A stretch of 64,000 bases of DNA, taken from sequence record PQ657772.1, one strand, 5' to 3'. How positions within the stretch are numbered: position 1 is the stretch's first letter; every line of letters starts with the position of its first letter. The translations under genes were made by a program, and so were the position numbers. The notes below the pieces were generated by a model, which was not told where the DNA came from, searched no databases, and saw nothing but the letters and a program-made list of their open reading frames with translations. This document shows, piece after piece, positions 1-64,000 of this stretch.

Positions 1-117
1 AGTATTATCTACTAAAACAAAAGTTTCACCTTCAGTTTCACCAAATGTACTTAGTGCATAAATGAAGTAGTTTGGTGATGCACTACAATATACATCAGCA
101 TTAATTTCAATCATATT

Positions 118-249
118 TTACACCACAATAAAGCTTAATACAACGAGTGTAATAAACACACCCACGATGGCAGTCATTTCTGGATTTGCATCATATGTGT
201 ATCGGATGCACTTTAGAAAATCTTTACCAAACTTTTTTAGTCCATTCAT
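118..249 (-). CDS. small membrane protein (43 aa, below ORF-track cutoff)
   Basis: Manual translation MNGLKKFGKDFLKCIRYTYDANPEMTAIVGVFITLVVLSFIVV*; one hydrophobic segment. Confidence 0.55.
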   Translation of the reverse strand: MNGLKKFGKDFLKCIRYTYDANPEMTAIVGVFITLVVLSFIVV

Positions 250-260
250 ATATTTTCCTT

Positions 261-617
261 TCATTTCTTGTGTAAAGGGTCGGTACTTTCATAATAGATT
301 GTATCATTATTTCGTTCAATAGTAAAACTCTTTTGACACAACTCTTCAGCTAAACCCTTAGCATAGTTTAATACATCTCGGTTGAGATATATTTCTTCTT
401 TTGGGAAGCGTGGGTACTGAATAATACGAGCACACATTCCACTTTCAAGACCACCCGTGTAGATGTATTCACACGGAATCAATTGTACACAAAATCCAAG
501 CTTGAATGCAAACTTTCGTGTGTACTCTCTTGCTGTTTGGATATCACCAGCAATATGAATATTCCAGTACTGTGTTTCAACTGTACCTTTGTCGATGTAT
601 TTCATACTCATCTCCAA
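261..617 (-). CDS. conserved phage hypothetical protein
   Basis: HIAGD...YIYTGG.E.G...IIQYPRFP pattern familiar from phage proteins; function unknown. Confidence 0.7.
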   Translation of the reverse strand: MEMSMKYIDKGTVETQYWNIHIAGDIQTAREYTRKFAFKLGFCVQLIPCEYIYTGGLESGMCARIIQYPRFPKEEIYLNRDVLNYAKGLAEELCQKSFTIERNNDTIYYESTDPLHKK

Positions 618-634
618 TTATAGCATAAAAAATC

Positions 635-1030
635 CTACTTGCCCAAATCTTCTATAATTCTTTTTATGATATCATTGTTTTCCAGACATAAAGTACTGAA
701 ATTTCTACCTGTTTTTTCATTGAGTTCATTAATCTCAAGCATAAGATAACCATAAGTGATATCTTGGACCCTACTTCGTTTTACCCTTGAGTACAGTCTG
801 ATGGGTACAGATACACGAGTATTCAAAAAGAATTCTGATAAATCATAACGATATACCAGGTATTCATTCTTGTAACGTTTACGACTGTACGATTCTAAAC
901 ACTGTGGGAAACGTCTATCAAACATACTACTTCTTAGTTGAAGTATGATTGGATCTAACTTATGCGAGAAATACTTTTTGATTATTTTATTAAATCTTGT
1001 TACATGTCGTTTACGCCATCTCATAATCAA
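635..1030 (-). CDS. hypothetical protein
   Basis: Tiles with neighbours; ATGA overlap at 1027-1030. Confidence 0.65.
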   Translation of the reverse strand: MIMRWRKRHVTRFNKIIKKYFSHKLDPIILQLRSSMFDRRFPQCLESYSRKRYKNEYLVYRYDLSEFFLNTRVSVPIRLYSRVKRSRVQDITYGYLMLEINELNEKTGRNFSTLCLENNDIIKRIIEDLGK

Positions 1031-1470
1031 ACCTTAAAAAATATAATAGGAAAGTATTTTGTTTCCGAATCTGAAATACTGTTACAGTAATCTTTCAATT
1101 CATCATGGATAACATTCAAATGAATAGTAGGATAGTTCATAGGTTTCTGTACTGGGCCAGTGGCATATACGCAATCTGTTCTATCCCAACTTACATATTG
1201 GGTTGGGTAATTATCTTTAGTACGTTCTTCAATAATAATATTATATTCTGGTGTATTGAATATATACATATCACATTGTGAAATGTACTGAACATTAAAA
1301 TCACCGTCAGTGATATGGATCATGTTCCCATCGCAATATAAGCATGATGGTTCAGTGTATCCTAAAATTGAAGATAAAGTTCTGAAGTTTGCTCCTGGAC
1401 CCAAATATACCAAATTCGTGTGTAAACAAATATCAATGAAACGTTTGAAGACTTCAGTTTCGTTATGCAT
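1027..1470 (-). CDS. hypothetical protein
   Basis: Tiles with neighbours. Confidence 0.7.
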   Translation of the reverse strand: MHNETEVFKRFIDICLHTNLVYLGPGANFRTLSSILGYTEPSCLYCDGNMIHITDGDFNVQYISQCDMYIFNTPEYNIIIEERTKDNYPTQYVSWDRTDCVYATGPVQKPMNYPTIHLNVIHDELKDYCNSISDSETKYFPIIFFKV

Positions 1471-1481
1471 ATAGATACCTT

Positions 1482-1505
1482 AAAAAGACCCCACATAGTG
1501 AGGTC
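1482..1505 (-). terminator. intrinsic terminator
   Basis: GACC/GGTC-closed hairpin followed by T5 on minus strand. Confidence 0.5.
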
Positions 1506-1513
1506 AAACACTT

Positions 1514-1738
1514 TTAAACGTTATCATCATCCAAAGCTTCACGGTACACATAATAAACATGCGTACCTAGAAGAACAATGAGTACAATGAATACTAACCA
1601 GAATGGTACAAAATGCAGTACAAGTGCAAATGCCATTACGGTAATAACCATCACTACTGAACTAAAAATAAGACTAGTAGCTTTTTTAAATCCAGATAGT
1701 ACATCATTCAAAACGCGTTTCATAAATGAATCAACCAT
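1514..1738 (-). CDS. membrane protein
   Basis: Two hydrophobic segments. Confidence 0.7.
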   Translation of the reverse strand: MVDSFMKRVLNDVLSGFKKATSLIFSSVVMVITVMAFALVLHFVPFWLVFIVLIVLLGTHVYYVYREALDDDNV

Positions 1739-3115: not shown

Positions 3116-3123
3116 ATAACTCC

Positions 3124-4006: not shown

Positions 4007-4395
4007 TCTTCAATCTCCATAGAGTCATCACTTTCGTAATCATCACTAGTGTACTTAGTTTTTACCTCAATACCATTCTCATGTAGGTATGTGATAAAGC
4101 CATTACCATGGACGAATTGATTATAATATGTATTTTCTTCTACATGTGAGTCATAATCATCTTCGTAATATGTGGGCATTGTAACATCATGACCTGCACT
4201 TTGCAAGTACTGGAACAATTCTTTCAGAACTACTTCGATATCACCTTCTTCTGTGCCATAACAATATGCAGGTTCACCGTGAGTGAATTTGAATCCTTTA
4301 CAGGAAACTGTATAAATGTCACTCATGTTCATACCACAATCATCACATTCATGTATAGAACAATGCTGGTGGAATTTAATCTTTTTGATTTGCAT
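4003..4395 (-). CDS. hypothetical protein with CxxC
   Basis: HECDDCG; tiles. Confidence 0.7.
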   Translation of the reverse strand: MQIKKIKFHQHCSIHECDDCGMNMSDIYTVSCKGFKFTHGEPAYCYGTEEGDIEVVLKELFQYLQSAGHDVTMPTYYEDDYDSHVEENTYYNQFVHGNGFITYLHENGIEVKTKYTSDDYESDDSMEIED

Positions 4396-5411: not shown

Positions 5412-5852
5412 TTATTGTAAAACTTTGAGTTTGTAAAGCATTCCTTCACAAAAACTCATAATGTCTTCTAGCGTGTTAGTACTACCATAGTCTTCAGCCT
5501 CTTCTAGCATAGCATGAATGGCTTTACATTGACTAACATATTCTTCAAGAATTGGTACACAATCCTCGATAGGGGTAAAACGATAACTGTTACCAGTACC
5601 TACCTGCAATGCCCCGTGAGTGTTCATAATACCCTCTACAAATGCATCAACGTACTCAGGTAACTCTTTGTATAGTTCATCCAATTGTAGGTGCTTCGTG
5701 TAGAAATGGCTCTGTAAATGCCAGTTGTGAGCAGCAGCACTTAAAAATAAACTATTCTCAATAAATGTAAGTAGTACTTCATCATAAGAACTATCTTCTT
5801 CAGTATCTCCGATAAAGTCCATTACATGTCGTAAATCATTAATATTTTCCAT
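5412..5852 (-). CDS. Dps/ferritin-like protein
   Basis: AHNWHLQ...KHLQLDELYKELPEYVDAFVE resembles the Dps ferroxidase helices (H..W, H...DELY....D...E). Confidence 0.8.
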   Translation of the reverse strand: MENINDLRHVMDFIGDTEEDSSYDEVLLTFIENSLFLSAAAHNWHLQSHFYTKHLQLDELYKELPEYVDAFVEGIMNTHGALQVGTGNSYRFTPIEDCVPILEEYVSQCKAIHAMLEEAEDYGSTNTLEDIMSFCEGMLYKLKVLQ

Positions 5853-7810: not shown

Positions 7811-8422
7811 TTAATTGTGATTATTCAATTTCTTTTGTTCTTTTTTTAGAGCTTTCATATGTCGTCCAAAATCACGAACATGCCATATATGGTCGGTTTC
7901 CCATAGTTCTGTACGTAAACGGCGTTCTTCCAATTCTTCTGGCGTAGGAATTTTAGATTTCTTCTTATCTTTATTGAAAAAATCATTCATATGTTCTTCC
8001 AGTAGATTTCTACCCTTAACTTTTTCCAGGAATTCATCTACTGATTCAGTTTTATTAGAACGAAGACTGTTACAACGTGAACACATGGTGTTGTAATTTG
8101 ACTCTAAATCAGGTCCACCCTTAGATGCTAGTTGGTTATGATCTACTGTCATCAGTACTTCATATAGACCACAAACTGCATAGACATTTAAGTGAGGTTT
8201 ACCATATACCGGATCAGTGCTATGTGAACGCTCAATGCGAACTTCAGTGGCTTCAATACCACACGCAACGCATTTACGATTCTTAACGAATGTAAGTACT
8301 TTTTGTGGGAAGTATCGGAAAGTAACACCGTTATATGTATAGCGTTTCATCTGCGTACTTCTTTGATTTAACTCATCAAGAAGTGATAGTTTGGCAACAT
8401 AGTAGACCTGATATTTTGACAT
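7811..8422 (-). CDS. HNH endonuclease-domain protein
   Basis: CVACG...TVDHNQLASKGG...N...MCSRCNSLRSN. Confidence 0.85.
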   Translation of the reverse strand: MSKYQVYYVAKLSLLDELNQRSTQMKRYTYNGVTFRYFPQKVLTFVKNRKCVACGIEATEVRIERSHSTDPVYGKPHLNVYAVCGLYEVLMTVDHNQLASKGGPDLESNYNTMCSRCNSLRSNKTESVDEFLEKVKGRNLLEEHMNDFFNKDKKKSKIPTPEELEERRLRTELWETDHIWHVRDFGRHMKALKKEQKKLNNHN

Positions 8423-9590: not shown

Positions 9591-10829
9591 TTATTTTTTA
9601 CTGTACCATTGCATTTCACGGATATCTAATAGTACCTTCGTAGCCAACTTTATGTTTGGTCGCTTCGGTAGATGGGTCTTATGATACGCCACATTTCGGA
9701 TGTAGTCAACCTTTTCGTTGAAATAATCCATAACTTCTTGATACAACCACTTCCCGTTACGAATGTCCATCAACATAGCAGCATCCGGTCGGTGAACTTG
9801 GATGATACCAGTTTCAAGTGCTTCCTGTGCTGTATTCAGCAGCCTGACTGTATGCATTGCGTGTTTACAATCATAACCGTGGTGTGATTCAAGAATAGCA
9901 CGTTTGGCATTACGATTCTGCTTCCATTTGTGATAACTCTTACGGTTCTCACTATTTTCTTTGTATTCTTTTTCATTGAATTTTACAATGAGTTCAGGAC
10001 GAACTTTCAATTCTTCTGTAGTACGTTCTTTGTTGAAGTAACGTAGTGAACCATCAGCATTCACTGTACTTTCATTCGGGTTGATAATTACCCCAAAGAT
10101 GTTTTCACCGTAATGGATTAGTTCATATCCAGAATTGTAATTCAATAAATTGAAATCACGATCTAATACTTTATCAGTACTATAATTATGTACTAAACGT
10201 ACAAAATGATATTGTTTCAATGCTTGTGTTGAAACTAATTGTAATGAAGTATCACGCATGTATTTTTCAAAATCAATTTTTGTAGCATTGAATGGGTGAA
10301 GATTGGATTTATTCAAACGGTCAACCAAATACTGCGGGAATGTATCATACATCCATGAAAGTACTTCGTCAACTGGATGTTCTTCTAAAATTTCATTTAG
10401 TTTACGTTCAGCAATTCGTTCCTTATCGAGCCAGCCGTGGTGATTAGACATACGCTTAACCTGATTGTATGCATATCCACTGTATGAGTGTGCAATCTTT
10501 GAACTCAATAATTGCTGATTGAATGAGCGTAGATAGTCATAGATTTCAGTACTTTCTACGATGTGTTCCGGTTTAACCCATAGTGATTCAAGAATGTTTG
10601 GGTTAGCTTCAGTATACAGACTTAAGTACTGATTGATTTCATAAAATTTAGTATCTTCTTCAGAAGTATCTGAAACTTCCTTAACATTAAAAAAAGGAGT
10701 TAGGATATATTCTTTGTTTGCAAGGAAGATACCACGATAATCTGTATCACTTTCTGGTGTGCTTGTGCCATACGCCTGTGAACCTGCTAAGTGTTTCACA
10801 ATAGTTTGTTCTAGAAAATTGTTTTTCAT
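9591..10829 (-). CDS. DNA pol beta-fold nucleotidyltransferase (RlaP/YcgL-like)
   Basis: GSQAYGTSTPESDTDYRGIF, ANPNILESLW, YDCKHAMHTVRLL. Confidence 0.9.
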   Translation of the reverse strand: MKNNFLEQTIVKHLAGSQAYGTSTPESDTDYRGIFLANKEYILTPFFNVKEVSDTSEEDTKFYEINQYLSLYTEANPNILESLWVKPEHIVESTEIYDYLRSFNQQLLSSKIAHSYSGYAYNQVKRMSNHHGWLDKERIAERKLNEILEEHPVDEVLSWMYDTFPQYLVDRLNKSNLHPFNATKIDFEKYMRDTSLQLVSTQALKQYHFVRLVHNYSTDKVLDRDFNLLNYNSGYELIHYGENIFGVIINPNESTVNADGSLRYFNKERTTEELKVRPELIVKFNEKEYKENSENRKSYHKWKQNRNAKRAILESHHGYDCKHAMHTVRLLNTAQEALETGIIQVHRPDAAMLMDIRNGKWLYQEVMDYFNEKVDYIRNVAYHKTHLPKRPNIKLATKVLLDIREMQWYSKK

Positions 10830-11227
10830 AAGTAAATCGTTAACTCCTTTAGAAAACCATTATAGTATCGTTTAAAATCATGATCCAGTACTTGATAGTC
10901 ATTGTAACTAAATCCAAGATTGATGATGGTATCTTCTTGGAAGAATTTCTCTTCATTCATTACTTCGATGGGTTCGTATTCTTTCCCACCTTTATATACT
11001 TTAGTAAAGAACATACCATCATTGTTAATTTCAACGTACATGAAATTATTTTCTGGATCTCGTGGACACACAATGTTTAGTGAACTGGTCCCGTTGTTAT
11101 TATATTCGTATGAAATAATATCAAAAGAATCGATGCCATAACATTTGGACTTTTCTTTGTCACCAAAGACTTTTCTATCTGTACTCATATTGCGTATAGT
11201 ACTGTAGATATCATCGATTGTAGTCAT
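10826..11227 (-). CDS. hypothetical protein (EE.FFQ motif family)
   Basis: MNEEKFFQEDTII. Confidence 0.7.
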   Translation of the reverse strand: MTTIDDIYSTIRNMSTDRKVFGDKEKSKCYGIDSFDIISYEYNNNGTSSLNIVCPRDPENNFMYVEINNDGMFFTKVYKGGKEYEPIEVMNEEKFFQEDTIINLGFSYNDYQVLDHDFKRYYNGFLKELTIYL

Positions 11228-11229
11228 AA

Positions 11230-11739
11230 TTAACCACCGTACTTTGACTTATATGTTTCTAAAGATAAAGAAATGCGATTTTGCTTTTTAATTCTTTCAT
11301 CAATATCCTTTGAATTCTTAACACTTCTGTATACATCAGCTAATAAATTATAATCTTCTTTATTTGAGCTATGTAATGCCCAACCTATATCTGTTTTGAT
11401 TCGAACATATGCTTTATTTGATGTGAAATAAAAATTGAATCCGTTAGACCCATCAAAAATATCATAAGTATTTACCCAATCTCCATAAGGAAAACTCATT
11501 GGTACTGACTCATAATCAATGGTGATATCCGATAAATTTTTAGAACAGTACTTTACAAAGTGGTAAACAATCGGATCACATTTTGATAATTCGTATTTGT
11601 ATTCAATGATAGTTTTTCTATTAGTATCATTGATGGCATATTCTTTTATCAATGGACTTTTTTTGATGATAAGAGTCCATAGAAACGATTCTAATCCAGT
11701 TTCATCAACTTTTTCTTTCTTTTTGAAAAATGAAATCAT
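11230..11739 (-). CDS. hypothetical protein, tandem paralogue 1 of 3
   Basis: KKSP.IK....D..R..IIE.KY.LSK. Confidence 0.75.
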   Translation of the reverse strand: MISFFKKKEKVDETGLESFLWTLIIKKSPLIKEYAINDTNRKTIIEYKYELSKCDPIVYHFVKYCSKNLSDITIDYESVPMSFPYGDWVNTYDIFDGSNGFNFYFTSNKAYVRIKTDIGWALHSSNKEDYNLLADVYRSVKNSKDIDERIKKQNRISLSLETYKSKYGG

Positions 11740-12257
11740 TTATATAAACCCTTAATTTTCTGTCTATTATGTATATCATTTTGCTGAATTTTCAAATTAG
11801 TAAGATTGTGTCTTACACCTTCAACGCCACGCATTATTTGTAACATAATTAGTGATTCGTCATATGTTAGAACATTGCTATTATTATCGATATATACTTT
11901 CACTCCACTTTCAAGATAATCATTTTCTTTGGAGTTAAAGTTTCTAATAGCAAACTTAACGCCATTTGTTGCATCACTGAATACATATCGTTCCGCACCG
12001 TAGAATGTTTTTCCACGAAATAAACCGCCTTCTTCAAACTTCCAACGACTGGATTCATAATCATTAACGTAATCAATGATTAATGGTAGCAAAGGGTGTT
12101 TGCTCAATTTATATTTTGCTTCTAACAGAACACGACGATCTTGATCTGTATTGATGATATCTTTAAGTGTGAAACTTTTTGATATAATTTTAAAGATAAT
12201 TTCATGCCAAATTAAAGTACTGTTTTGTTTTCCAACTGGGCCAAAAAACATATTCAT
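11736..12257 (-). CDS. hypothetical protein, tandem paralogue 2 of 3
   Basis: SKSFTLK...TDQDRRVLLEAKYKLSK. Confidence 0.75.
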   Translation of the reverse strand: MNMFFGPVGKQNSTLIWHEIIFKIISKSFTLKDIINTDQDRRVLLEAKYKLSKHPLLPLIIDYVNDYESSRWKFEEGGLFRGKTFYGAERYVFSDATNGVKFAIRNFNSKENDYLESGVKVYIDNNSNVLTYDESLIMLQIMRGVEGVRHNLTNLKIQQNDIHNRQKIKGLYK

Positions 12258-21770: not shown

Positions 21771-21885
21771 AAAGTACTGCTAATATAAAAACTGCCCAAA
21801 TTAGCAGTACTACATTGGTTGGAGCGGCAAAAAACATATATGCAGCAATTGCACTGCATCCGATTACAAGTTTAGCTAGTCTCAT
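21769..21885 (-). CDS. small membrane protein (38 aa)
   Basis: Manual translation MRLAKLVIGCSAIAAYMFFAAPTNVVLLIWAVFILAVL*. Confidence 0.55.
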   Translation of the reverse strand: MRLAKLVIGCSAIAAYMFFAAPTNVVLLIWAVFILAVL

Positions 21886-23279: not shown

Positions 23280-23644
23280 GTGTGAATAATTTCTTTGACC
23301 CCATATTCCATAATTGCCAACGTACAAATCTCACAAGGCTTTGCAGGGACTGGAATACCATCTTTACTTACCCGTGCAATCAACAAAGTATGAACTTCAG
23401 CACGAGAAGCCAGCAAACATGAGATTTCAGCATGAAGAAATTCACCTTGTGGACGACCAGCACGGATTGCAAAACCTTTCTGTACTGGGTGAGTATGTGT
23501 GTAAGAATTAGTACGTGTTGCCAATACACGACCTTTCTTATCTAGTGCACGAGCAATCACACGATAACGTTTGTAGCTCCCCACTTGCTCGATGGGTGGC
23601 ATCCGTCGTAATTCTTCAATTAGTTTCTCAAGTTTACGATTCAT
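23276..23644 (-). CDS. Zn-dependent cytidine/nucleotide deaminase-fold protein
   Basis: LHAEISCL and AKPCEIC motifs. Confidence 0.85.
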   Translation of the reverse strand: MNRKLEKLIEELRRMPPIEQVGSYKRYRVIARALDKKGRVLATRTNSYTHTHPVQKGFAIRAGRPQGEFLHAEISCLLASRAEVHTLLIARVSKDGIPVPAKPCEICTLAIMEYGVKEIIHT

Positions 23645-24267
23645 AAGTCTAAGTCTATGCCCTTTTCAAATGATTTCTCTAGAACCCAAAGTTTACATTC
23701 TTCACTCTCCAAATGCATCTTTGCCTCTTTCTGTTGTTCTATTGTACAAGACTTTATAAATTCACGCAAGGCTTCTATTGTACTTTTTATATTTTTTATG
23801 TCTTCGAGAATTGTTTCTTTGGATTCGGCATCAATTACAGATGAACTCCACCCGTGACGTTCTTCCCAAACTGTTTTTGCTGAATTGTAAATTGATGATG
23901 TAGGAATGACTGCATGGATCTTATTAAACGTATCGTCTGCTTCTTGTTGGGTGTAATCACCATAAGTGTTTAGCACATTTTTGTATAGTTCATCAATTGC
24001 CTCATCATAAGTATCACCACCGCAATCTAACTCATAATCATGTGCTTGTACCCATTCATCATCTTGCTCAACGTACATAGGTGAGATGAATTCTACCCAA
24101 AATTGTGTCTTTGTATTCAGAGCTTTAAATGATTCAATGCGGTTTGTGATTGGACACACATCATGTGGTTCGATATCAATCCTTGGGGGAACCATATCTC
24201 CGTTGATGAATTTAGGATGGCCCATAATCCACCAGTACTTTTCAGATGTAGTCATTGTAATCTCCAA
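23641..24267 (-). CDS. hypothetical protein
   Basis: WWIMGHPKF...ELDCGGDTYDEAI. Confidence 0.75.
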   Translation of the reverse strand: MEITMTTSEKYWWIMGHPKFINGDMVPPRIDIEPHDVCPITNRIESFKALNTKTQFWVEFISPMYVEQDDEWVQAHDYELDCGGDTYDEAIDELYKNVLNTYGDYTQQEADDTFNKIHAVIPTSSIYNSAKTVWEERHGWSSSVIDAESKETILEDIKNIKSTIEALREFIKSCTIEQQKEAKMHLESEECKLWVLEKSFEKGIDLDL

Positions 24268-24300
24268 TTAAAAAGTACTGCCACTATAACAGTACTGATA

Positions 24301-24660: not shown

Positions 24661-24827
24661 AACTTATAACCCATTACTGGTTTTGAATAATCAGGTTCAT
24701 AAAACTTTTCAGTACTGAACCCTCTGAAATTACCACGACCTGGCTTCGGACAAGCCATCCCTTCTACACCGTGCTTACCCTGAACCTTTCCGCAGTTTTT
24801 GCATTTGTATCCAATAACTTCTTTCAT
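24657..24827 (-). CDS. small Cys/His protein (56 aa)
   Basis: Manual translation MKEVIGYKCKNCGKVQGKHGVEGMACPKPGRG...; ATGA overlaps at both ends. Confidence 0.7.
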   Translation of the reverse strand: MKEVIGYKCKNCGKVQGKHGVEGMACPKPGRGNFRGFSTEKFYEPDYSKPVMGYKL

Positions 24828-25072
24828 TGTGCATCCTTTGGAATAGTGTTAAGGCGTGTACGGTTTACAATCTTCCTGCACATGAGATTAAGATCTTGCC
24901 CATGACGCATCTCATGGCAAGCATACAATGTACCATCATAGTTAAGTTTAGTCAAATTCTGGCGAATGAACTCTGCATCAGCCTCCTGAACTTTAGGTGC
25001 ACAGCCACAGAGAGTAATGGACACAAATATTGTTAATGTAATGAATATATTTTTCATGATATTTTTTCTCAT
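24824..25072 (-). CDS. putative lipoprotein
   Basis: Signal peptide ending ITLCGC. Confidence 0.6.
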   Translation of the reverse strand: MRKNIMKNIFITLTIFVSITLCGCAPKVQEADAEFIRQNLTKLNYDGTLYACHEMRHGQDLNLMCRKIVNRTRLNTIPKDAQ

Positions 25073-26040
25073 TTTGGGCTATAACCACTTTTAATTTTAG
25101 AAATTACTTTCTTCTCGAAGAACTTACGTGCTTCTTCAATAGTTTTGAATTCTTCACCATCTGTAGTACTGGTTTTACCAATAGCACCATACTCAATAAT
25201 TACTTCACACACTGGAGCATTCAATTCAATATTATAGAATTTGTTCGAAGAACCGTGAACATATTCCAAATGTACATTATCAGGAATGTTCTGCACATAA
25301 TCATAGTTCTTGAAGATAATATCAATCATATTTTCTTCACCGCGATCAGGAAATAGTTCAGTATTATTCAGTACTAAACGCTGTGCAGCACGGAACATAT
25401 CAAAATATTGTTCACCTTTTTTCAGTTCTTTTGTATCAGAACAGAAATGACCATAGTATTCTACATAATCATTCCAAGGATAAATTCCTTCATCAGCAGT
25501 TTCAAAAGCGTAAGTTTCATCTTGTGGAACTTTAAAACCACGAGTTTTTGGATGGGAAATTAAGCACAGTGAAATATTATGACCGATATCTGAATCATCA
25601 GTAATACTACCACCAACCATATGAACAACATTTTTAATACGTTCAAAATCTACATCTTCAATTTCATGATACATTAAATGTTCTTCAATATTACTTACTA
25701 GTAATGAATTACCATTTCCTGCATCGAATTCAAAAATGAAAAGTTCTACACAATCTTCTTCTTTCATTTCAATAGTATCACTGAGTTTAATATACTCATT
25801 TTTTACTTGTTCAATATTTTCATGAGAACCAAAACTATAACGAGAACTGATATAACTACTACCATCCAACCATCCCATATCCCAAGGTTCTTCTGACATG
25901 TATTCGGTGCTATAGAAATCAGTCAAATCATCTCTCTGAGTACAAACCGTAAGAGAACGAACATTATTAAGACCTTGAACTTCAAGATTCAGTACTGTAG
26001 TGTTGCCGATTTTTTGTTCAGAAATAATTTTAGTTTTCAT
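25069..26040 (-). CDS. acidic protein with C-terminal WGR-like domain
   Basis: LEYVHGSSNKFYNI...EYGAIG....EEARKFFEKKVISKIKSGY. Confidence 0.75.
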   Translation of the reverse strand: MKTKIISEQKIGNTTVLNLEVQGLNNVRSLTVCTQRDDLTDFYSTEYMSEEPWDMGWLDGSSYISSRYSFGSHENIEQVKNEYIKLSDTIEMKEEDCVELFIFEFDAGNGNSLLVSNIEEHLMYHEIEDVDFERIKNVVHMVGGSITDDSDIGHNISLCLISHPKTRGFKVPQDETYAFETADEGIYPWNDYVEYYGHFCSDTKELKKGEQYFDMFRAAQRLVLNNTELFPDRGEENMIDIIFKNYDYVQNIPDNVHLEYVHGSSNKFYNIELNAPVCEVIIEYGAIGKTSTTDGEEFKTIEEARKFFEKKVISKIKSGYSPK

Positions 26041-38718: not shown

Positions 38719-40137
38719 TTAACCAAGTGATTCAAGAATACTGTTAGAGAACACCTCAACAGCACTATCACGAATTTCTAAGATACGAGTATAGTCGTCA
38801 CAGGTGTTTTTGTCAAATCTAAATTCAATAAACACTGGTAAAAATAGTGATGGATCACCAGTACGCTTATCGAATACAATATCATTGCACTCTACTGTCA
38901 CTACTTGACCAATGAGTTCTTGCATTCTTTCCCAAATGGTTTTAAACGTCCATTCTGCGTCTTTCTCTTTAATTCCAGTACCTACATTAACTTTCAATGT
39001 ACCACAAGCACTTTCCAGTTGTAAAGAACCAAGGCTACCTTTACGCTTACCTTCACCTTCATTGAAACCAACAATACGCAAGTCCAATTGCATTTTAAGT
39101 TTCATTTTCAACTGCTTAGGAGAAGTGTGAGATTTCCAGATACCATCTTCACATTTCAGTACTGAACCCTCTTCACCTTCGTTCATTAGTTCACTATTGT
39201 ACTCAAATGCTTCTTTGATGTTTAGAACTTTACGGAATCCAACCATACGAACAAAATCACTACCGAGTTCGTTAATTGCATCTACTAAGATCTCGCGGCG
39301 TTCTTTGCGTTTTACATCCCATACACCTTCACAAAATGCATCATATGGAACAACATCCCATAGAACGAATACAGTACGCATTGCTTCATTCTGACTGATG
39401 CTATCTTTACCAGCTTTCTGAATGATACCGTTACCAGTAGTGCGTGGGAGAATGGTTTCTCCATCATTGTCCAGTACTACACCTTCACCCATAAAGACTA
39501 CACCACTACTAAAACGTTCATCTTTACTTTGGATGATGTGAGCAAGACCTGCCATTTCACCATCACGACAACCCAGGAAGTCGTATAGTTTGCCATTACG
39601 GGATGTAGAAGTTAATGAACCATTAATGACAACGTGGTTCAAGTACTGACCATCCATTTTAACTTCTGATATAGCATAACCATAATCTTTGAAGTTAATG
39701 TTCTTTGCAGTCTTTTTGTCAATCAAAGAACAACGCATGTATGGTTCGTCTTTGATGAAACCTTTCCCGAACACATCATTACAGTTCTTTTCTTGGATAC
39801 CACAATCAAGGTTCTTCGTGAGCATTTTACGAAGAACTTCTTGGTCATCTTCTGATACAGAACCCAGTACTGAAGCAATGAAGTCACGTCCAGCATTTCC
39901 GGTCACACCACGTTTGTAAATGCATTCTAGCTTATCAATTGCTTCGTCTAATGTCATATGTTGGTATACATCATCAGCTTGTGGTAGCTTTTTATATCCA
40001 CTTACAATTGAAGGGTCTAGTGTATATTTCAGTACTTTTTGTAATGTTTGGTTATCTTTGTTTTGTTCAAGGATAGATTTTTTACCCAGAGTACTGCTAG
40101 TATTTTTAATGCTTTCAAGAATTGCTAAAATGCTCAT
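38719..40137 (-). CDS. lig: ATP-dependent DNA ligase
   Basis: EVKMDG adenylation motif, SRNGK, GEEGSVLK, KMK, OB fold with SLFLPVF.EFRFDK. Confidence 0.96.
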   Translation of the reverse strand: MSILAILESIKNTSSTLGKKSILEQNKDNQTLQKVLKYTLDPSIVSGYKKLPQADDVYQHMTLDEAIDKLECIYKRGVTGNAGRDFIASVLGSVSEDDQEVLRKMLTKNLDCGIQEKNCNDVFGKGFIKDEPYMRCSLIDKKTAKNINFKDYGYAISEVKMDGQYLNHVVINGSLTSTSRNGKLYDFLGCRDGEMAGLAHIIQSKDERFSSGVVFMGEGVVLDNDGETILPRTTGNGIIQKAGKDSISQNEAMRTVFVLWDVVPYDAFCEGVWDVKRKERREILVDAINELGSDFVRMVGFRKVLNIKEAFEYNSELMNEGEEGSVLKCEDGIWKSHTSPKQLKMKLKMQLDLRIVGFNEGEGKRKGSLGSLQLESACGTLKVNVGTGIKEKDAEWTFKTIWERMQELIGQVVTVECNDIVFDKRTGDPSLFLPVFIEFRFDKNTCDDYTRILEIRDSAVEVFSNSILESLG

Positions 40138-49596: not shown

Positions 49597-50257
49597 CAGA
49601 CAAAGATTCGTTGTACTGATGCCTGAAATTAGTATTTGGATTATTTGTCATTGTACTAATAAAATCAAATTTAACATTCTCTTGAATGTAATTAATAACA
49701 TTATCTTTAAATTTAATAGTACTGAAGTCTAAATCTAAATGTTCATACAATACAGGATGACAAAACTCATGTGTACGCAATGATGGCATGGTATCCTTAA
49801 TGTATTGCACAGTGTTAATCATTGCATTGTACTCAGGCATAGCACGCATCATCATTAGCTGAAAGTGTTCTTCCTCTGACATTGACTCATCCAAATCAAT
49901 AACGACTTCATCATTTTTAGAGTCATATACTTTAATGGAACTCTTTGTTGGATCAAGCATAGCCCACTCTGGATACAGGCATGTTTTCCAAAAAGGATTA
50001 TTGCACTGAAACATACTAATGAGATTTTGATTTTTATCAAAAATAGCAAATCCAAGATCCGAACTTGGCTGTACTTCACATACACAAATATCATAAGGGG
50101 AGTCTTCAGTACTGAATGAACCAACTACATTTGATATATGTGAATATGGAGTTTCTCTTGATTTTAATTCAAAGGCTCTCTCCATACGATTAACCTGTGG
50201 TTGTAATGTAATTACACCCCTCAGTACATATAAAATTCTATCTAAATCTTTAATCAA
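49568..50257 (-). CDS. hypothetical protein (EE.FQL motif family)
   Basis: MSEEEHFQLMMM. Confidence 0.7.
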   Translation of the reverse strand: MIKDLDRILYVLRGVITLQPQVNRMERAFELKSRETPYSHISNVVGSFSTEDSPYDICVCEVQPSSDLGFAIFDKNQNLISMFQCNNPFWKTCLYPEWAMLDPTKSSIKVYDSKNDEVVIDLDESMSEEEHFQLMMMRAMPEYNAMINTVQYIKDTMPSLRTHEFCHPVLYEHLDLDFSTIKFKDNVINYIQENVKFDFISTMTNNPNTNFRHQYNESLSGGRDTTWWK

Positions 50258-57014: not shown

Positions 57015-57548
57015 TTATTTCCTCATGTATTTTATTACATCTTCAAATAGTTTAGTTTTCAGTGCATCATCATTACCAGGTAGAAAAGTACTGAAGCTAT
57101 TAAAATCTTCATTTTTGGCAAACTCACGCATCTGTGTGGAACTGTAGCGACTTACATTTCGGTCAATTCCAGCTTGAACTGCCTTGATTGAACAAAAATT
57201 ATATAACTTCCCATTGTACGTGTCAAGTGTTTTTTGGAATGGTTCAAGTCTATCTGAACCACATATGAAAAGAACATCTAAGTACTTTCCATCCAGTTCT
57301 CTCATTATATCAAACAGATTATCTTCTGTATAGATATTTTCTTGTACAGATGGGTAAAATCCTTCTGTATAGTACATTTTCAGTTCAGGAGGTAATGGGT
57401 TTTTGACGGCATCAGTACTGGTACTAAGGAATATTTTCAAATCAGCATTGTACTGTTCTTGTAGTGCTTGAGCTTTTTCAAACACTAAACCATGACCTCG
57501 ATGTACAGGGTTAATTCTTCCGAATGTCACTACGCATGTTTCTTTCAT
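57015..57548 (-). CDS. cytidylyltransferase/NMN adenylyltransferase-like (HxGH) protein
   Basis: FGRINPVHRGH, KNPL, CGSDR, SST.MR. Confidence 0.88.
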   Translation of the reverse strand: MKETCVVTFGRINPVHRGHGLVFEKAQALQEQYNADLKIFLSTSTDAVKNPLPPELKMYYTEGFYPSVQENIYTEDNLFDIMRELDGKYLDVLFICGSDRLEPFQKTLDTYNGKLYNFCSIKAVQAGIDRNVSRYSSTQMREFAKNEDFNSFSTFLPGNDDALKTKLFEDVIKYMRK

Positions 57549-58069
57549 ATGTTCTTCATCACCTGACCAATAGATTTAAGATGGTTGATTTTAGCTGGAG
57601 TCAAATACTTATCCAGTACTATTAAACAACTAGGGAATGGAGCACTGTCAGTCTTTTTATCTGGTTCTTCAGGGATACCGAACTTTAAGCGACCTTTTAT
57701 AAAACAAATACAATCACAAACTTTCGCAGCATAATCCTGAAAGGCTATAGTATCAGTTCTTGATGGTACGAGAATCAGTACTGTAGCACCTTTGTTATAT
57801 GCATCAACTGCCTTAGATAACCACGTTTTCAAATCACTGTACGGTGGGTTGAGCCACACGATATTGTTTCCCCAGTCCTGTTCAAGTGAATTGTCTTCTG
57901 GTGTAAAGAACTTATCACACAATGCAGTTTCTTTGACACACGCTGCATCTAGTGTAAATTCCCAGAGTTCATCCAAATCTTCAAAGAAATCCTTTGGAGT
58001 AGTCCAGTTATCTTTTCCAGTACTGAAATGTACTGATTGTTTTTTCTTCGAAGCATCCTTCTTCGACAT
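57545..58069 (-). CDS. phage-type DNA N6-adenine methyltransferase
   Basis: W.TP..FF..L...F.LD, WLNPPYS, LVPSRTDT, FIKGRLKF, APFPS. Confidence 0.9.
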   Translation of the reverse strand: MSKKDASKKKQSVHFSTGKDNWTTPKDFFEDLDELWEFTLDAACVKETALCDKFFTPEDNSLEQDWGNNIVWLNPPYSDLKTWLSKAVDAYNKGATVLILVPSRTDTIAFQDYAAKVCDCICFIKGRLKFGIPEEPDKKTDSAPFPSCLIVLDKYLTPAKINHLKSIGQVMKNI

Positions 58070-58085: not shown

Positions 58086-58682
58086 TTATAGACAGTTAAG
58101 TACTATGTCATCAAAAGTACTACTGTCAATGTTGTATTCATATAAAAATTTAAAATGTGATCCATAACGCATCATCAGATTAAACTCTTCTTCAGTATTA
58201 AATTTGTAATCATGAAGAGTTTCAAGGGTACATGTTAAACCTAAAAACTCAATAATTTCTGATGTTACATCATTTCCTGAATTGAAGTATTTAACCCAAA
58301 CACATTTTCCTTGTGGGTTGAATTTTCTATATTCTCCTTCTAGTTCTCCATTGACGATATGTGCTTTCGCACTGATTAGATTATTACTATAACGCTCTTC
58401 GTAGTAGTTCCCATAACGAGCTTTAAGAATTGTAGGCTTCTTGGTTGGGAATAACTTAATGGAAGTTAATTCAAAACCGCACTGCAACTCTTTGATGTAC
58501 GAAATACATCCCTTTTCTTTAATCACAACAAAACCAGTAAAATTCTCTTGGTCTTGGTTCTGATTGTCTGAATCAACAAATTCTAGTGTTTTATAAGTGA
58601 CGCTTTTAGATTTTTTAATAAATGACATCATTATTCCTATGGAAACATCAATGACTGTACATGGCGTTGACTTCATCAACAC
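58086..58682 (-). CDS. MORN-variant repeat protein with EE.F motif
   Basis: NGELEGEYRKFNPQG; true start probably MSFIKK. Confidence 0.7.
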   Translation of the reverse strand: MLMKSTPCTVIDVSIGIMMSFIKKSKSVTYKTLEFVDSDNQNQDQENFTGFVVIKEKGCISYIKELQCGFELTSIKLFPTKKPTILKARYGNYYEERYSNNLISAKAHIVNGELEGEYRKFNPQGKCVWVKYFNSGNDVTSEIIEFLGLTCTLETLHDYKFNTEEEFNLMMRYGSHFKFLYEYNIDSSTFDDIVLNCL

Positions 58683-58689: not shown

Positions 58690-58718
58690 ATTATACACGC
58701 TTCGCATGTCTAATTCAA
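58690..58718 (-). promoter_or_regulatory. sigma70-type promoter TTGAAT-N17-TATAAT downstream of element B
   Basis: Read directly. Confidence 0.6.
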
Positions 58719-58748
58719 CGAAAGTACTATGATTTGTTTTAATTAATA

Positions 58749-61017: not shown

Positions 61018-61027
61018 CAATATTTTA

Positions 61028-61321: not shown

Positions 61322-61337
61322 ACCAAATCCTCCATAA

Positions 61338-62186
61338 TTACATTGTTTCTTTTATGTTGCGTAACATAGTATTAACTATGTTCATCTTCCCGCCTAACTT
61401 GAAGTAATATTCCAATTTATTAATAATATTACTTTTTAATATCTCAAATATTTGATATTCATTTGTTTCGAAACCAAGTTCGAATTGGAAAGTATATAAA
61501 TTGTTGAATAGATGTACCAACGATGCATCAGGTGATTCCATTGTAAATGTGTAGTTGGTACGATAACCAGTACTAATCACCACTTCCGATGATTCACCTT
61601 TCATGAATATGTCAATATTATACATCATTGGGCGACCAGTTGCAATATCTTTCATTCGGAAGAATGCAGTACTACGATACACAACACCATCTTCGGTAAC
61701 CTTTTCTTGTATAGTGATATTTGAAACTTCACTCTCTTTGAATTTGGATTCGAATGAATGAATACGATTTGATTTTTCATCATCCGTATACATAGTGCAT
61801 GTATATTTTCCAAAATCATCTCTAGATGTATATGATTTATCGCTGGCGGTTTTATAAAACGAAACCCCATTGATGTGTTCTTCTTTGTACATCATTGTGT
61901 CATTGGATTTGTAGTATGAACAATTAGGTGTTGAAAGAGATTCAAAATTGTTCACATCATGACAGTAAGAAATAGAAGAATCGCTATACAGTACTACATC
62001 ACGAATTGCAACTTCTTTTGAAGTACCTTTTTTGACAGAAATTTGAAAGTCATTGCATGGGAAGATTCTATATCCATCGTATGTATCTGATGTACTGATA
62101 CCAAATGGTGTTGGGGAATTCAGAAATTCGTTGATATGTTCAAGTACTGAATACTTTTTGAAATTACGAAAATCTGTTGTATCCAT
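61338..62186 (-). CDS. hypothetical protein
   Basis: GGAG SD; 282 aa. Confidence 0.75.
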   Translation of the reverse strand: MDTTDFRNFKKYSVLEHINEFLNSPTPFGISTSDTYDGYRIFPCNDFQISVKKGTSKEVAIRDVVLYSDSSISYCHDVNNFESLSTPNCSYYKSNDTMMYKEEHINGVSFYKTASDKSYTSRDDFGKYTCTMYTDDEKSNRIHSFESKFKESEVSNITIQEKVTEDGVVYRSTAFFRMKDIATGRPMMYNIDIFMKGESSEVVISTGYRTNYTFTMESPDASLVHLFNNLYTFQFELGFETNEYQIFEILKSNIINKLEYYFKLGGKMNIVNTMLRNIKETM

Positions 62187-62219
62187 AGTAATACAATCTC
62201 CTAAATTTCGGACAAAAAA

Positions 62220-62351
62220 TTAGTCGAGAATAAATCTCGACTTGTGTTTTACTTTACCATTCTTCATTGCTTTTTTACGGTCCACATGTGTTTGAGGTTT
62301 ATTAAACTCATTCATATGCTTTTGTACAAAGTTGTTTACATTTTTAGCCAT
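62220..62351 (-). CDS. small basic phage protein (43 aa)
   Basis: Manual translation MAKNVNNFVQKHMNEFNKPQTHVDRKKAMKNGKVKHK...; stop lies within a terminator hairpin. Confidence 0.7.
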   Translation of the reverse strand: MAKNVNNFVQKHMNEFNKPQTHVDRKKAMKNGKVKHKSRFILD

Positions 62352-62353
62352 AC

Positions 62354-62827
62354 TTACTCCAAATCGGGATCTTTAACTGTTAGGCTTTCAATATCACTTG
62401 CGTAAAGAACTACATTAGTTTGTGTCTCTGATACTTTAAAATCATGATAACTATCTTTCACTTTAAAATTATCCAAAATAAACCCTTTACTACAACACAT
62501 CATGATTTTATCATCTTTGATAGTGTATGTATTCTTTTTCTTACGTACTTCAGATTGTGGGGTAATATTATCATTGTTACGAATAACACAATCAATGTAC
62601 TCGTCATTTGTACTCATAGGCATACCCATGATAAACGAATTACTAGTACTGATTGTTAGTATGAAAACATTAGTATTTGGATTGTGAAAGAAGTCGTGCA
62701 TAGTTTTACTGCATAAAAACAAGCACTGAATTATGTCCTTTACATTGAACATTATATCATGAACTTTGAATGCGTCCAACTCTAAAATGTCATCTATCTT
62801 TCCATTCTCAACAGTTTTAATCTCCAT
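62354..62827 (-). CDS. hypothetical protein
   Basis: AGGA SD. Confidence 0.7.
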   Translation of the reverse strand: MEIKTVENGKIDDILELDAFKVHDIMFNVKDIIQCLFLCSKTMHDFFHNPNTNVFILTISTSNSFIMGMPMSTNDEYIDCVIRNNDNITPQSEVRKKKNTYTIKDDKIMMCCSKGFILDNFKVKDSYHDFKVSETQTNVVLYASDIESLTVKDPDLE

Positions 62828-62869
62828 GATCTATCCTTGATCTTCAAAGGCACTCCATGTGCACATATA

Positions 62870-63370
62870 TTAGGTCACAGCTTTGTATTTCTCCATTGCT
62901 TCGGTGATATTCAATACTGCTTGCGGTACGTCACTTTTGTTGTATGCAGTGGTTAGTTTTTCCATGTTATTGAGAAGACTTAGAAACAATGGAAGTACTT
63001 CTGCATTGTCACTGAAGTTACAATCATTGACAGTACTCAATTGGAATAACTCACCTGCATCAACATTGAGTGTGTTGTATTCTTTAACAATGTTTTCTTC
63101 AGTATTGAAGATGTAGAATACAGTCCCCATGTGGTGTAAGTATACACCAGTATCATTCTGAATATGACATGGGGTGATTACAATTGCTGTGTTATCAATA
63201 TTATTTACTATTGTCAAACGCAGACTATGTAACCCAAAGATTACAGTACAATCCTTTGTGCTGTGTTGGATCTGGTCACTAGTAAAGGAAGACCCACTAG
63301 AAGTTTTAGACCCATTTAGTATTTCTTTGATAATTTTAAATGAATACTTCATCGAATTAGTTAAAAGCAT
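62870..63370 (-). CDS. hypothetical protein (FQL motif family)
   Basis: DAGELFQLSTVN. Confidence 0.7.
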   Translation of the reverse strand: MLLTNSMKYSFKIIKEILNGSKTSSGSSFTSDQIQHSTKDCTVIFGLHSLRLTIVNNIDNTAIVITPCHIQNDTGVYLHHMGTVFYIFNTEENIVKEYNTLNVDAGELFQLSTVNDCNFSDNAEVLPLFLSLLNNMEKLTTAYNKSDVPQAVLNITEAMEKYKAVT

Positions 63371-63770
63371 GAACTTTACCTTTAAGTAAATTAATTAATG
63401 TTCGCATAGATTCAGTACTGACAGTCCCAAAATCAACACCTAAGCACTCGTATTGAAAGAACTCAATAGAATCAATTGAGTCCAAAGGAATCTCAACAAC
63501 CTGATTCCCTATACCAGACATAGTAACATTGCTTTTATTAATCGTCAAGAAGTTTTTTGAATAAGTATTAAATTTTAGTGAAATCGCATCGGGGTGCTTT
63601 GTAACAATGCAGTACTGGGAGCCATACACATATAGTACTTTACTTTCACTAAGATCTGTTTTAAAAAAATGAATCCCATTGAAGTATTTCTCATTGGCTC
63701 CCATCGCCGCGATTAGTTCATCTGTTGTTGTTAACCTTGTTTCGTTCTTCGTTAAACTGTTGAAAAGCAT
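63357..63770 (-). CDS. hypothetical protein (FFQ motif family)
   Basis: DSIEFFQYECLG. Confidence 0.7.
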   Translation of the reverse strand: MLFNSLTKNETRLTTTDELIAAMGANEKYFNGIHFFKTDLSESKVLYVYGSQYCIVTKHPDAISLKFNTYSKNFLTINKSNVTMSGIGNQVVEIPLDSIDSIEFFQYECLGVDFGTVSTESMRTLINLLKGKVHAFN

Positions 63771-64000
63771 AGAATACTACCTTAACCATTTGTAGTGTTT
63801 CAGACATTACTTCTGATGAAAATTCAACATCATTGAATTTCAGCATAGTGTTCTGTGTAAAGAAAGTTGCTTCTAAGTCTTCTAGATTGAAGGGTTCATC
63901 AAACAAATTAGTACTGAACATGTCAGTCTTCTTCTTGTATGTGAACAAGAATTTGGAATTATAACGAAGAACTATTTCATCTTTATTGACCAGAATGCGT

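Follow-up and report, generated by a model that had tools for sequence, protein, structure and literature searches.

The stretch of DNA considered here (the window, 64,000 bp) corresponds at 100% identity to positions 248001-312000 of the record of Escherichia phage EC.P1 (PQ657772.1, 356,444 bp, 586 proteins). EC.P1 has E. coli as its host and is an Asteriusvirus (PBECO4/121Q-like), among the RaK2-like jumbo myoviruses. The window contains 118 annotated genes, all but one on the minus strand; 92% of it is coding and its GC content is 34.6%. Dispersed through these genes and the DNA between them is the palindromic hexamer AGTACT, whose large excess is the subject of this analysis. The complete EC.P1 genome was also analysed, relatives were sampled as ~41-kb pieces, and E. 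coli K-12 was compared as a 50-kb sample. Coordinates are those of the window unless they are given as record positions. The motif and its fullest forms are located as follows.

1-64000, unstranded: AGTACT, 184 dispersed copies with the consensus ttCAGTACTGaa, about 1 per 350 bp (from counts, flanks, frames and codon-aware nulls)
24708-24719, unstranded: TTCAGTACTGAA, a perfect 12-bp palindrome and the motif in its fullest form, with AGTACT at 24711
39155-39166, unstranded: 12-bp perfect palindrome TTCAGTACTGAA, with AGTACT at 39158
50105-50116, unstranded: 12-bp perfect palindrome TTCAGTACTGAA, with AGTACT at 50108

Abundance, flanks and coding context of AGTACT

A first-pass annotation of the window, made from its letters alone, had estimated about 180 copies of AGTACT. 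The exact count is 184, where 21.5 are expected from base composition and 17.2 ± 3.9 (largest 27) were found in 100 dinucleotide-preserving shuffles of the window. AGTACT is the top-ranking hexamer of the window, and the next unrelated hexamer, TTTCAT, has 115 copies. The annotation had allowed that its claim would fall if other hexamers were equally enriched; only GTACTG and CAGTAC, which overlap AGTACT, reach a comparable ratio of observed to expected copies (O/E), and no unrelated hexamer comes near.

The bases around the hexamer are also patterned. C is found at -1 in 89 of the 184 sites and G at +1 in 88, and further out the sequence is rich in T at -2 to -4 and in A at +2 to +4, giving a context that is reverse-complement symmetric to ±4. 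Extended forms in the window are CAGTACTG (44 copies), TCAGTACTGA (11 copies) and TTCAGTACTGAA (3 copies). Such symmetric extension had been claimed for copies at 24708, 39155 and 50105, and TTCAGTACTGAA lies exactly at these positions. Since the genes are on one strand, coding constraint is one-sided, and flanks that are symmetric despite it suggest recognition of the duplex, not of RNA or a single strand. Nearly all of the DNA is transcribed and the window genes share one strand, so every site would be in mRNA, and the ACU-free block described below shows that a strand-specific, possibly RNA-level, constraint exists in the genus. A signal in transcripts, with AGUACU as for example a processing or stability site, might be proposed on these grounds. 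However, it would give no reason for a palindrome or for symmetric flanks, the density of sites is the same in non-coding DNA, and many copies lie upstream of -35 elements, where they are probably untranscribed. We regard a signal of this kind as highly improbable.

Most sites (170 of 184) are wholly within annotated coding sequences (CDS), where AGTACT is read as Ser-Thr (86), x-Val-Leu (57) or x-Tyr-x (28). Among the codons for Ser and Thr, AGT and ACT are the most used, and the excess could be taken for an artefact of composition, of the usage of codons or dipeptides, or of a family of dispersed repeats. Synonymous codons were shuffled within each gene, which keeps the proteins (hence all dipeptides) and the codon usage of each gene. 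These shuffles gave 44.0 ± 5.6 copies (maximum 69), compared with 171 observed in coding DNA (z ~23), and thus the enrichment stays under the codon- and dipeptide-aware null on which the annotation had staked its claim. Shuffling the order of codons led to an expectation of 23.7. Redrawing codons from usage outside the motif led to one of 31.9, which indicates that the high usage of AGT and ACT is itself partly caused by the motif. Frame by frame, the observed counts of 86, 28 and 57 compare with means of 26, 7 and 12 under the protein-preserving null (3.3-5x), and fully non-coding DNA of the window has 13 copies where 1.7 are expected. The earlier claim that the sites occur in all frames is therefore correct, and it extends to non-coding DNA. 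With three nulls and the enrichment in all frames and in non-coding DNA, a codon, dipeptide or composition artefact is ruled out. A dispersed repeat or mobile element is ruled out as well, as similarity between copies stops at ~10-12 bp. The artefact is an explanation already refuted.

The proteins themselves carry traces of the motif. Ser-Thr pairs are inflated 1.69x and Val-Leu pairs 1.45x, and 86 of the 148 Ser-Thr pairs are encoded by AGTACT, compared with 22 expected. This excess of Ser-Thr and Val-Leu shows that pressure for the motif altered protein sequences. Sites are uniform along the length of genes, and short and long genes are equal in density.

Two intergenic pairs illustrate the context of sites in non-coding DNA.

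21773-21811, unstranded: pair of AGTACT 33 bp apart, intergenic, upstream of nrdD
24274-24296, unstranded: pair of AGTACT 17 bp apart, intergenic, directly upstream of the minus-strand gene 23641-24255

The first AGTACT of the pair upstream of nrdD adjoins GCACCctagaGGTGC, a hairpin that resembles a terminator and precedes a T run; the annotation of G17 has a terminator at the corresponding position.

Distribution in the EC.P1 genome and among phages

The complete EC.P1 genome has 975 copies of AGTACT, compared with 120 expected (8.1x, 1 per 366 bp), and AGTACT is again its commonest hexamer. Periodic spacing had been put forward as something to look for, and it was not borne out: the sites are spaced nearly as a Poisson process would place them, and no short-range period is obvious. 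In the core of the genome (20-320 kb) the coefficient of variation of the gaps is 0.91, slightly more even than random, with fewer very short and very long gaps than random. Density rises two- to threefold at record 347-356 kb and 0-20 kb.

Textbooks cite phages as the prime example of genomes that avoid palindromes, and in EC.P1 the avoidance of restriction sites is extreme. GCGC has no copy in the 356-kb genome, where 185-350 are expected. There are 22 six-base palindromes at zero copies, including the BamHI, PstI, SalI, XhoI, SacI, KpnI, SphI, NheI, PvuI and StuI sites, and four more at one copy. GATC is depleted (O/E 0.52), the sites of EcoRI and EcoRV occur at the usual rate, and GTGCAC is enriched 2.3x. 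AGTACT is the lone exception in a genome purged of palindromes more thoroughly than most. Its enrichment is the opposite of avoidance, and thus restriction avoidance is no explanation for it; EC.P1 has so many sites (about 1,000, and about 2,700 for RsaI) that it has to withstand ScaI-type restriction or disarm it. How the DNA behaves toward restriction and methylation at these ~1,000 ScaI/RsaI sites matters for engineering or typing these phages, which are candidates for therapy.

The same excess was found in other members of the group. In ~41-kb samples, AGTACT occurs 66 times in fENko-Kae01 (Klebsiella), 83 times in Eneladusvirus pEa_SNUABM_19 (Erwinia) and 99 times in RaK2, and Xanthomonas phage XaC1 has 159 copies in 40.5 kb, 11.7x expectation. 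The enrichment ranges from 5x to 12x across Asteriusvirus, RaK2, fENko-Kae01, Eneladusvirus and XaC1. No enrichment was found in the samples of PAC2 (Pseudomonas, PA5oct-like; 3 copies, 13.6 expected), RsoM2USA (Ralstonia; 6 copies) and JSF5 (Vibrio; 4 copies), and the unrelated coliphage alia avoids the site, with no copy where 13.8 are expected. GCGC is at zero in the samples of RaK2, fENko-Kae01, Eneladusvirus and XaC1, and normal in those of alia, PAC2 and RsoM2USA. In the sample of E. coli K-12, there are 3 copies of AGTACT (11.6 expected; 1 per ~17 kb) and 342 of GCGC (~1 per 150 bp). Both words sharply separate phage DNA from host DNA, and a high density of AGTACT together with the absence of GCGC is a simple signature of the clade for metagenomes. 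Since the AGTACT trait tracks the phage lineage across host orders, its cause is likely to be phage-encoded rather than a host factor, and since the absence of GCGC also tracks the phage clade and not the host, it suggests a phage-encoded, GCGC-directed activity.

The motif stands in promoters that are read by the host sigma-70 RNA polymerase, and AGTACT is under-represented in the E. coli sample. Both observations would suit a site of a host protein, such as an enterobacterial nucleoid protein or regulator, that the phage exploits. However, the trait is equal or stronger in the Xanthomonas phage, it is found in Klebsiella, Erwinia and Serratia phages as well, and coliphage alia avoids the site. 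A factor common to all those hosts but used by one phage clade is not expected, and we consider this explanation very improbable.

A physical or packaging signal without a dedicated reader was considered too. In this case the flexible GTAC and TA steps would aid bending, condensation or ejection of the 350-kb genome, or terminase or topoisomerase would have a loose preference for them. The sites are dispersed and slightly more even than random, their density peaks in the terminal redundancy and in 2 kb of non-coding DNA close to the probable end of the genome (19 sites, see below), and very large capsids are common to the clade. Yet many sequences would serve such a purpose, whereas a single hexamer with base-by-base specificity and symmetric flanks is observed, the unrelated jumbo relatives PAC2 and RsoM2USA are of similar size and lack the enrichment, and the placement at promoters is too precise. 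We judge a signal of this type to be quite unlikely.

The clade thus purges palindromes more than almost any other and yet retains about 1,000 copies of AGTACT against mutation, codon preference and protein sequence. Its retention in phages of hosts from E. coli to Xanthomonas suggests a conserved, presumably important phage function that lies outside the present annotation. A full-text search of the literature (subscription-only papers being outside its reach) returned no account of AGTACT, of CAGTACTG or of palindrome over-representation in these phages, and the genome papers of RaK2, Sharanji, phAPEC6 and G17 make no mention of an over-representation of AGTACT. The phenomenon is apparently new to the literature.

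Turnover of sites, methyltransferases and comparison with HIP1

Conservation was assessed in an alignment of four genomes (EC.P1, Ecwhy_1, G17 and PBECO4) over window positions 1-49400. In G17, 85 of 121 EC.P1 sites (70%) are intact, compared with 42% for hexamers in general, and the sites private to either sub-clade number 31 and 33, so gains balance losses. Where a Ser-Thr pair in frame 0 is conserved, AGTACT is retained in 37 of 42 cases, with 22.1 predicted from the same codons elsewhere. Orthologues at ~70% nucleotide identity have 38-39% of sites in common, compared with 16-18% for any hexamer. Conservation beyond background has been used to infer selection on the cyanobacterial palindrome HIP1 (PMC5861425). 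By the same reasoning of Xu et al., conservation beyond background with balanced turnover points to a continuing directional force, by which the sites appear to be held while their positions are partly free. The motif is kept at ~1 per 250-400 bp against mutational decay, at a cost in synonymous freedom and even in amino-acid sequence, and independently of the host. The first-pass annotation had proposed, in general terms, a phage-intrinsic process that selects these sites, and the signal at the DNA level, the conservation and the clade-wide spread agree with it.

Templated insertion of the hexamer was considered as a source of new sites and rejected, because multi-base gains (e.g., TACATT to AGTACT in Ecwhy_1) all fall within recombinant patches with clustered flanking substitutions. 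These patches also make polarised rates of gain and loss on short branches unreliable. EC.P1 and Ecwhy_1 are 99.1% identical overall, with short blocks of clustered substitutions, and a tail-fibre insertion of ~3.4 kb in G17 and PBECO4 has no counterpart in EC.P1. Such patchy divergence among near-identical Asteriusviruses suggests frequent mosaic recombination within the genus.

The words that differ from AGTACT at one position were counted in the whole genome. Their O/E is 1.0-2.4, except for AGGACT/AGTCCT (0.4), and that of the deamination products AGTATT/AATACT is 1.16-1.32. Counts of XGTACT are graded (A 975, T 334, G 149, C 97), and changes at the outer position (NGTACT) have an O/E of 1.4-2.2, compared with 1.0-1.6 for inner changes. 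This graded preference and the undepleted neighbours look like those of a binding matrix. Very-short-patch repair would have left a different trace, and a Vsr/Dcm-like footprint was rejected since the one-mismatch deamination neighbours are not depleted. The annotation's proposal that methylation-directed or very-short-patch repair creates the sites is thus disfavoured.

A motif scan of all open reading frames (ORFs) of at least 100 aa identified two candidate DNA methyltransferases in EC.P1, and both were confirmed by Pfam. One of them is in the window.

57545-58069, minus strand: gene of a Dam-family N6-adenine DNA methyltransferase, 174 aa, PF05869 (Pfam E 2.3e-32)

This gene adjoins a cytidylyltransferase-like gene. 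Its orthologues, at 42-100% identity, are in every AGTACT-rich lineage sampled, XaC1 included, and are usually beside a cytidylyltransferase gene. No relative of solved structure was found for the Dam-family enzyme, and no second DNA methyltransferase was found by Pfam in the 10 neighbouring genes. The PF05869 enzyme is a candidate writer or reader of AGTACT, and the only one that can be named. The link to methylation that the annotation had drawn is therefore upheld as far as an orphan Dam-family methyltransferase co-occurs with the motif, and it goes no further than that co-occurrence.

The other candidate is a C5 cytosine methyltransferase of 286 aa (record 83,819-84,679, minus strand, outside the window), which is conserved in 121Q, CBB and RaK2. 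Over its full length, its best solved relatives are the catalytic domains of mammalian DNMT3A/3B (E 1e-23), ahead of M.HhaI and M.HaeIII. RaK2 DNA has methylated CpG by bisulfite sequencing (RaK2 paper), and together with the likeness to DNMT3 this suggests that the enzyme is a compact CpG methyltransferase in these phages. As the AGTACT enzyme it is disfavoured by its DNMT3 likeness, by the CpG methylation of RaK2, and by alia and JSF5, which have a homologue at 44-50% identity and avoid or lack AGTACT. Neither methyltransferase can be assigned to AGTACT as part of a phage-borne ScaI-type restriction-modification system, of which the scan covered the methyltransferase side; moreover, a restriction site that is merely protected would be neutral, not enriched.

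HIP1 (GCGATCGC) is the highly iterated palindrome of cyanobacteria, enriched 15-300x (Xu, Lawrence & Durand 2018, PMC5861425), and alternate highly iterated palindromes are also found in cyanobacteria (Elhai 2015, PMC4390886). AGTACT had been called a HIP1-like signature, and the comparison holds in the features by which these two studies recognise such palindromes: abundance as the top word, dispersal beyond peptide and codon usage, and conservation. The methyltransferase that goes with such palindromes has a candidate in the PF05869 enzyme, which co-occurs with the motif in all rich lineages sampled. Like HIP1, AGTACT is a short perfect palindrome, found about once per gene or more densely, in all frames and in non-coding DNA, with above-background conservation and a co-occurring orphan methyltransferase; deviations from it concentrate at the outer bases, as they do for HIP1 (Elhai 2015, PMC4390886). 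The two differ in that HIP1 is a GC-rich octamer of a cyanobacterial phylum and AGTACT an AT-rich hexamer of a phage clade, enriched 8-12x, and in that a cognate methyltransferase has been demonstrated only for HIP1. Unlike HIP1, AGTACT is accompanied by a near-total purge of other palindromes and has a defined placement in promoters. A periodicity of 10-90 kb has been reported for HIP1, and the 356-kb EC.P1 genome gives little power for such periods. AGTACT is not HIP1 proper, as its sequence is another, the phage is proteobacterial and CGATCG has 0 copies in EC.P1. In every feature tested but a demonstrated cognate methyltransferase, it behaves like the cyanobacterial palindromes. The purpose of iterated palindromes has been a question since HIP1 was first described, and these phages make a tractable model for it, with a small genome, a fast cycle, laboratory hosts (e.g., E. 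coli K-12 for Sharanji and others) and one or two candidate methyltransferases.

The model that Elhai developed for HIP1, a biased repair drive, has to be weighed here. It holds that very-short-patch or mismatch repair linked to a methyltransferase converts near-cognates to AGTACT, and the motif would then be a by-product with no function. The palindrome has the size of a type II methyltransferase site, the orphan Dam-family methyltransferase is conserved with the trait, the deviations are mostly outer ones, the density is equal in coding and non-coding DNA, and the spacing is near-Poisson. Moreover, where one clade has AGTACT and the other does not, the other repeatedly has AATATT, two symmetric transitions away (4 of 64 differences). 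However, neither AGTATT/AATACT nor any other neighbour except AGGACT is depleted as this drive would require, and multi-base gains are within recombinant patches instead of being isolated conversions. The effect of Vsr in E. coli is far smaller than an 8-fold enrichment that overrides amino-acid sequence. The ~15x excess of TGTACT in the block described below is unexpected from a drive to the exact palindrome, and the fixed promoter positions shared by EC.P1 and RaK2 indicate function. From the same conservation argument, Xu et al. (PMC5861425) favoured selection for HIP1. A repair drive is unlikely in our assessment.

The AGT-free block, early promoters and a proposed reader of AGTACT

At record 329,797-338,473, outside the window, EC.P1 has 8,676 bp without AGT on the plus strand, where the genome-wide mean spacing of AGT is 49 bp, and no other trinucleotide has remotely so extreme a gap in this genome. 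As the genes of the block are encoded by the minus strand, ACT is missing from all frames of their coding strand: ACA specifies Thr 73 times and ACT not once. The plus strand has a normal amount of ACT, and the CT dinucleotide is halved on the coding strand. AGTACT is impossible in the block. Its plus strand has ~50 copies of TGTACT, ~15x expectation, which appear as AGTACA on the coding strand; GTACT is 5.6x enriched on the strand with normal ACT. That the next-best TGTACT fills in under a second, strand-specific constraint suggests selection for recognisable sites with a GTAC core over a drive to the exact palindrome. The block is also in fEgEco12 and PBECO4, and its recurrence in three genomes that were sequenced independently rules out an assembly artefact. 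At the homologous RaK2 locus it was not found. Ten proteins of the block have no significant Pfam family, with one sub-threshold match to PIMT_C. The ban on ACT could reflect the recognition triplet of a primase, an ACU-specific ribonuclease or a strand-specific nuclease.

Another stretch free of AGTACT, at record 341,448-347,421 (6 kb), shows no enrichment of GTAC (15 copies, 17.6 expected). It consists of a tandem array of ~25 small ORFs (70-85 aa), possibly a recently expanded or acquired gene family.

The primase can also be considered for AGTACT as a whole. T4 primase gp61 recognises 5'-GCT/GTT-3' and makes a 5-nt primer plus one cryptic base. If the T4-type primase of this clade read 5'-ACT-3', AGTACT would template pppGUACU on both strands and serve as a start site for bidirectional priming. 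AGTACT is AGT plus ACT, with 5'-ACT-3' on both strands; a T4-like primase and helicase are annotated in these phages; and a 6-nt motif fits a 5-nt primer with its cryptic base. A block that lacks ACT on the coding strand only, with GTACT enriched on the other, is a strand-specific trinucleotide rule that would fit a primase site. On the other hand, primases are not known to need symmetric contexts of 6-10 bp, and ACT already occurs about once per 48 nt. The symmetric flanks (C at -1 and G at +1, T-rich and A-rich further out) suit a dimer on duplex DNA, and priming leaves the promoter positions unaccounted for. RaK2 is enriched in AGTACT yet has no ACT-free block at the homologous locus, and so the two phenomena are separable. 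We find primase start sites an improbable explanation.

The highest density of AGTACT, ~1 per 150 bp, is in a terminal early region of ~25 kb (record 347.4-356.4 kb and 1-17 kb) made up of small genes with spacers of 80-100 bp, where 70 of 119 sites are intergenic. A terminal redundancy of ~20 kb is reported for G17 (G17 genome paper), and the early region is probably in or adjoining a redundancy of that type. Each of its genes has a strong sigma-70-like cassette (TTGCAA-16-TATAAT or TTGACA-16/17-TATAAT) and a GC-rich leader hairpin. Promoters were taken as consensus matches only, on the gene strand (28 strong matches), and 19 of the 28 have AGTACT at defined places. In 13 promoters it overlaps the upstream edge of the -35 element (AGTAC|TTGCAA, AGTACTA|TTGACA), in 12 it abuts the -10 element (AGTACTG|TATAAT), and six carry both copies, ~22 bp or two helical turns apart. 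Promoters of this region include those at record 732-705 and 4388-4360. RaK2 has the identical layout at promoters that precede tRNA genes, in otherwise different sequence, and the layout was seen once in XaC1. In EC.P1, no tRNA was found in the early region, including record 10,013-11,996. A palindrome at fixed core-promoter positions, with the layout kept in relatives, is what is expected of an operator, and it was found for ~45 of the 975 sites. The placement suggests an operator-like, or methylation-sensitive, arrangement and is the strongest hint that AGTACT is read; it also offers an assayable phenotype. It belongs to DNA outside the window, and the first-pass annotation had not foreseen it. 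The closest likeness to this layout in the window is the following, which is weak on its own.

58690-58728, minus strand: AGTACT (58723-58728) 4 nt upstream of a sigma-70-like match TTGAAT-17-TATAAT (58718-58690; 10/12 consensus match), ahead of the gene 58086-58628

Record 10,013-11,996 comprises 2 kb without annotated CDS and has 19 AGTACT. It contains the unit TTTCTATATAGG-AGTACT-ATTATTC-AGTACT in duplicated form, together with clustered iteron-like repeats (TAGCCGT/TAGCCAT). Linear records from several other laboratories start near record 10.0-12.0 kb of EC.P1, and thus a genome terminus or origin may lie there. In XaC1, an AGTACT is followed by four to five intergenic tandem copies of the 12-bp unit AAATTCTGTACT (locus 2050-2140); this iteron-like cluster, which contains GTACT, might offer the same reader a set of high-affinity sites, or be an origin.

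Other systems show parts of this arrangement. TF1 of SPO1 (which recognises hydroxymethyluracil DNA) and p6 of phi29 (which recognises bendability) are genome-coating proteins that also repress early promoters. AGTACT resembles them in phage-specific recognition of a whole chromosome with preferred sites at early promoters, and the EC.P1 early region shares the architecture of those phages, a terminal redundancy full of small host-takeover genes; it is likewise similar to the host-takeover modules of SPO1 and T5. It differs in that the DNA is apparently ordinary and would be recognised through an iterated hexamer, and in that the protein is hypothetical. At the Dam methylation sites (GATC) in the promoters of IS10 and dnaA, activity follows the state of replication and methylation. 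AGTACT is similarly a short palindrome in -35 and -10 regions, and a Dam-family enzyme is encoded in the window, whereas methylation of AGTACT is hypothetical and GATC is depleted in EC.P1. Chi (GCTGGTGG, E. coli) and the DNA uptake sequences and uptake signal sequences (DUS/USS) of Neisseria and Haemophilus are, like AGTACT, dense short words, read by a specific machine that tells own from foreign DNA. They are asymmetric, orientation-dependent and cellular, whereas AGTACT is palindromic and phage-borne.

We tentatively prefer, without calling it probable, the reading that AGTACT (consensus ttCAGTACTGaa) is a positively selected site on duplex DNA for a phage-encoded, probably dimeric, sequence-specific factor conserved in RaK2-like phages, which would use it both as an operator in early promoters and, across the genome, as a dense mark. 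The factor would recognise AGTACT on double-stranded DNA and, judging by the position of the sites, act as an operator-binding switch at early promoters. The same reader may bind all of the ~1,000 sites, or a methyltransferase may mark them, giving the phage chromosome a dense mark that host DNA lacks (1 per 366 bp compared with 1 per ~17 kb). This mark could organise or protect phage DNA, or single it out for phage enzymes. The partner might be the Dam-family methyltransferase at 57545-58069 or, equally possible, a separate DNA-binding protein.

Several points weigh against this reading. The reader is hypothetical. Promoter-type sites are only ~45 of 975, and promoter-like matches in the window are not above chance (97 compared with 110 expected), so an operator role leaves the bulk of the sites unexplained. 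The early promoters of EC.P1 look like duplicated cassettes, which inflates the figure of 19 out of 28. The link to the PF05869 enzyme is one of co-occurrence only, hundreds of other genes are distributed alike, and the family includes GATC-specific enzymes as well as non-specific ones. The sole negative lineage for this co-occurrence is a weakly documented one, in that a methyltransferase is absent from the text of the PA5oct paper. The extra conservation and balanced turnover would also be expected under a strong biased-repair drive, and the relatives are known from ~41-kb pieces.

A broader idea combines AGTACT with the absence of GCGC, and we put it forward as speculative and rather doubtful. 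RaK2-like phages might use a two-word identity code by sequence alone, without base hypermodification or a phage nucleus. AGTACT (~1 per 300 bp) would stand for self; a phage protein or methyltransferase would read it, control early promoters, and shield phage DNA or recruit machinery to it. GCGC would stand for non-self, for a phage nuclease or other GCGC-directed activity. The ACT-free block would be a third, strand-specific layer, giving immunity to an ACU/ACT-specific nuclease or forming an unprimable zone. If true, this would be a new kind of viral discrimination between self and non-self.

The Chi octamer is itself ~14x over-represented in EC.P1, with 8 copies of GCTGGTGG and 25 of CCACCAGC, compared with 2.3 expected. 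In the window, GCTGGTGG is at 4365 and 58812, and CCACCAGC is at 34688, 37023, 41592 and 49215. The copies are mostly on the minus (gene) strand, and seven are clustered in the last 8 kb of the record. This excess may be partly codon-driven (CTG-GTG, GCT-GGT) or may be a real anti-RecBCD feature.

Four minus-strand genes of the window (5412-5852, 7811-8422, 9591-10829 and 25069-26040) are possibly relevant to nucleic-acid handling. The types among them are a DUF5856/ferritin-like protein (elsewhere annotated as a starvation-inducible DNA-binding protein), an HNH endonuclease, an RlaP-type nucleotidyltransferase (RNA-repair pathway) and a WGR-domain protein. Other genes of the window encode homologues of T4-like RNA ligase 1, polynucleotide kinase, DNA ligase, NrdD/NrdG, Sir2, PhoH and ClpP.

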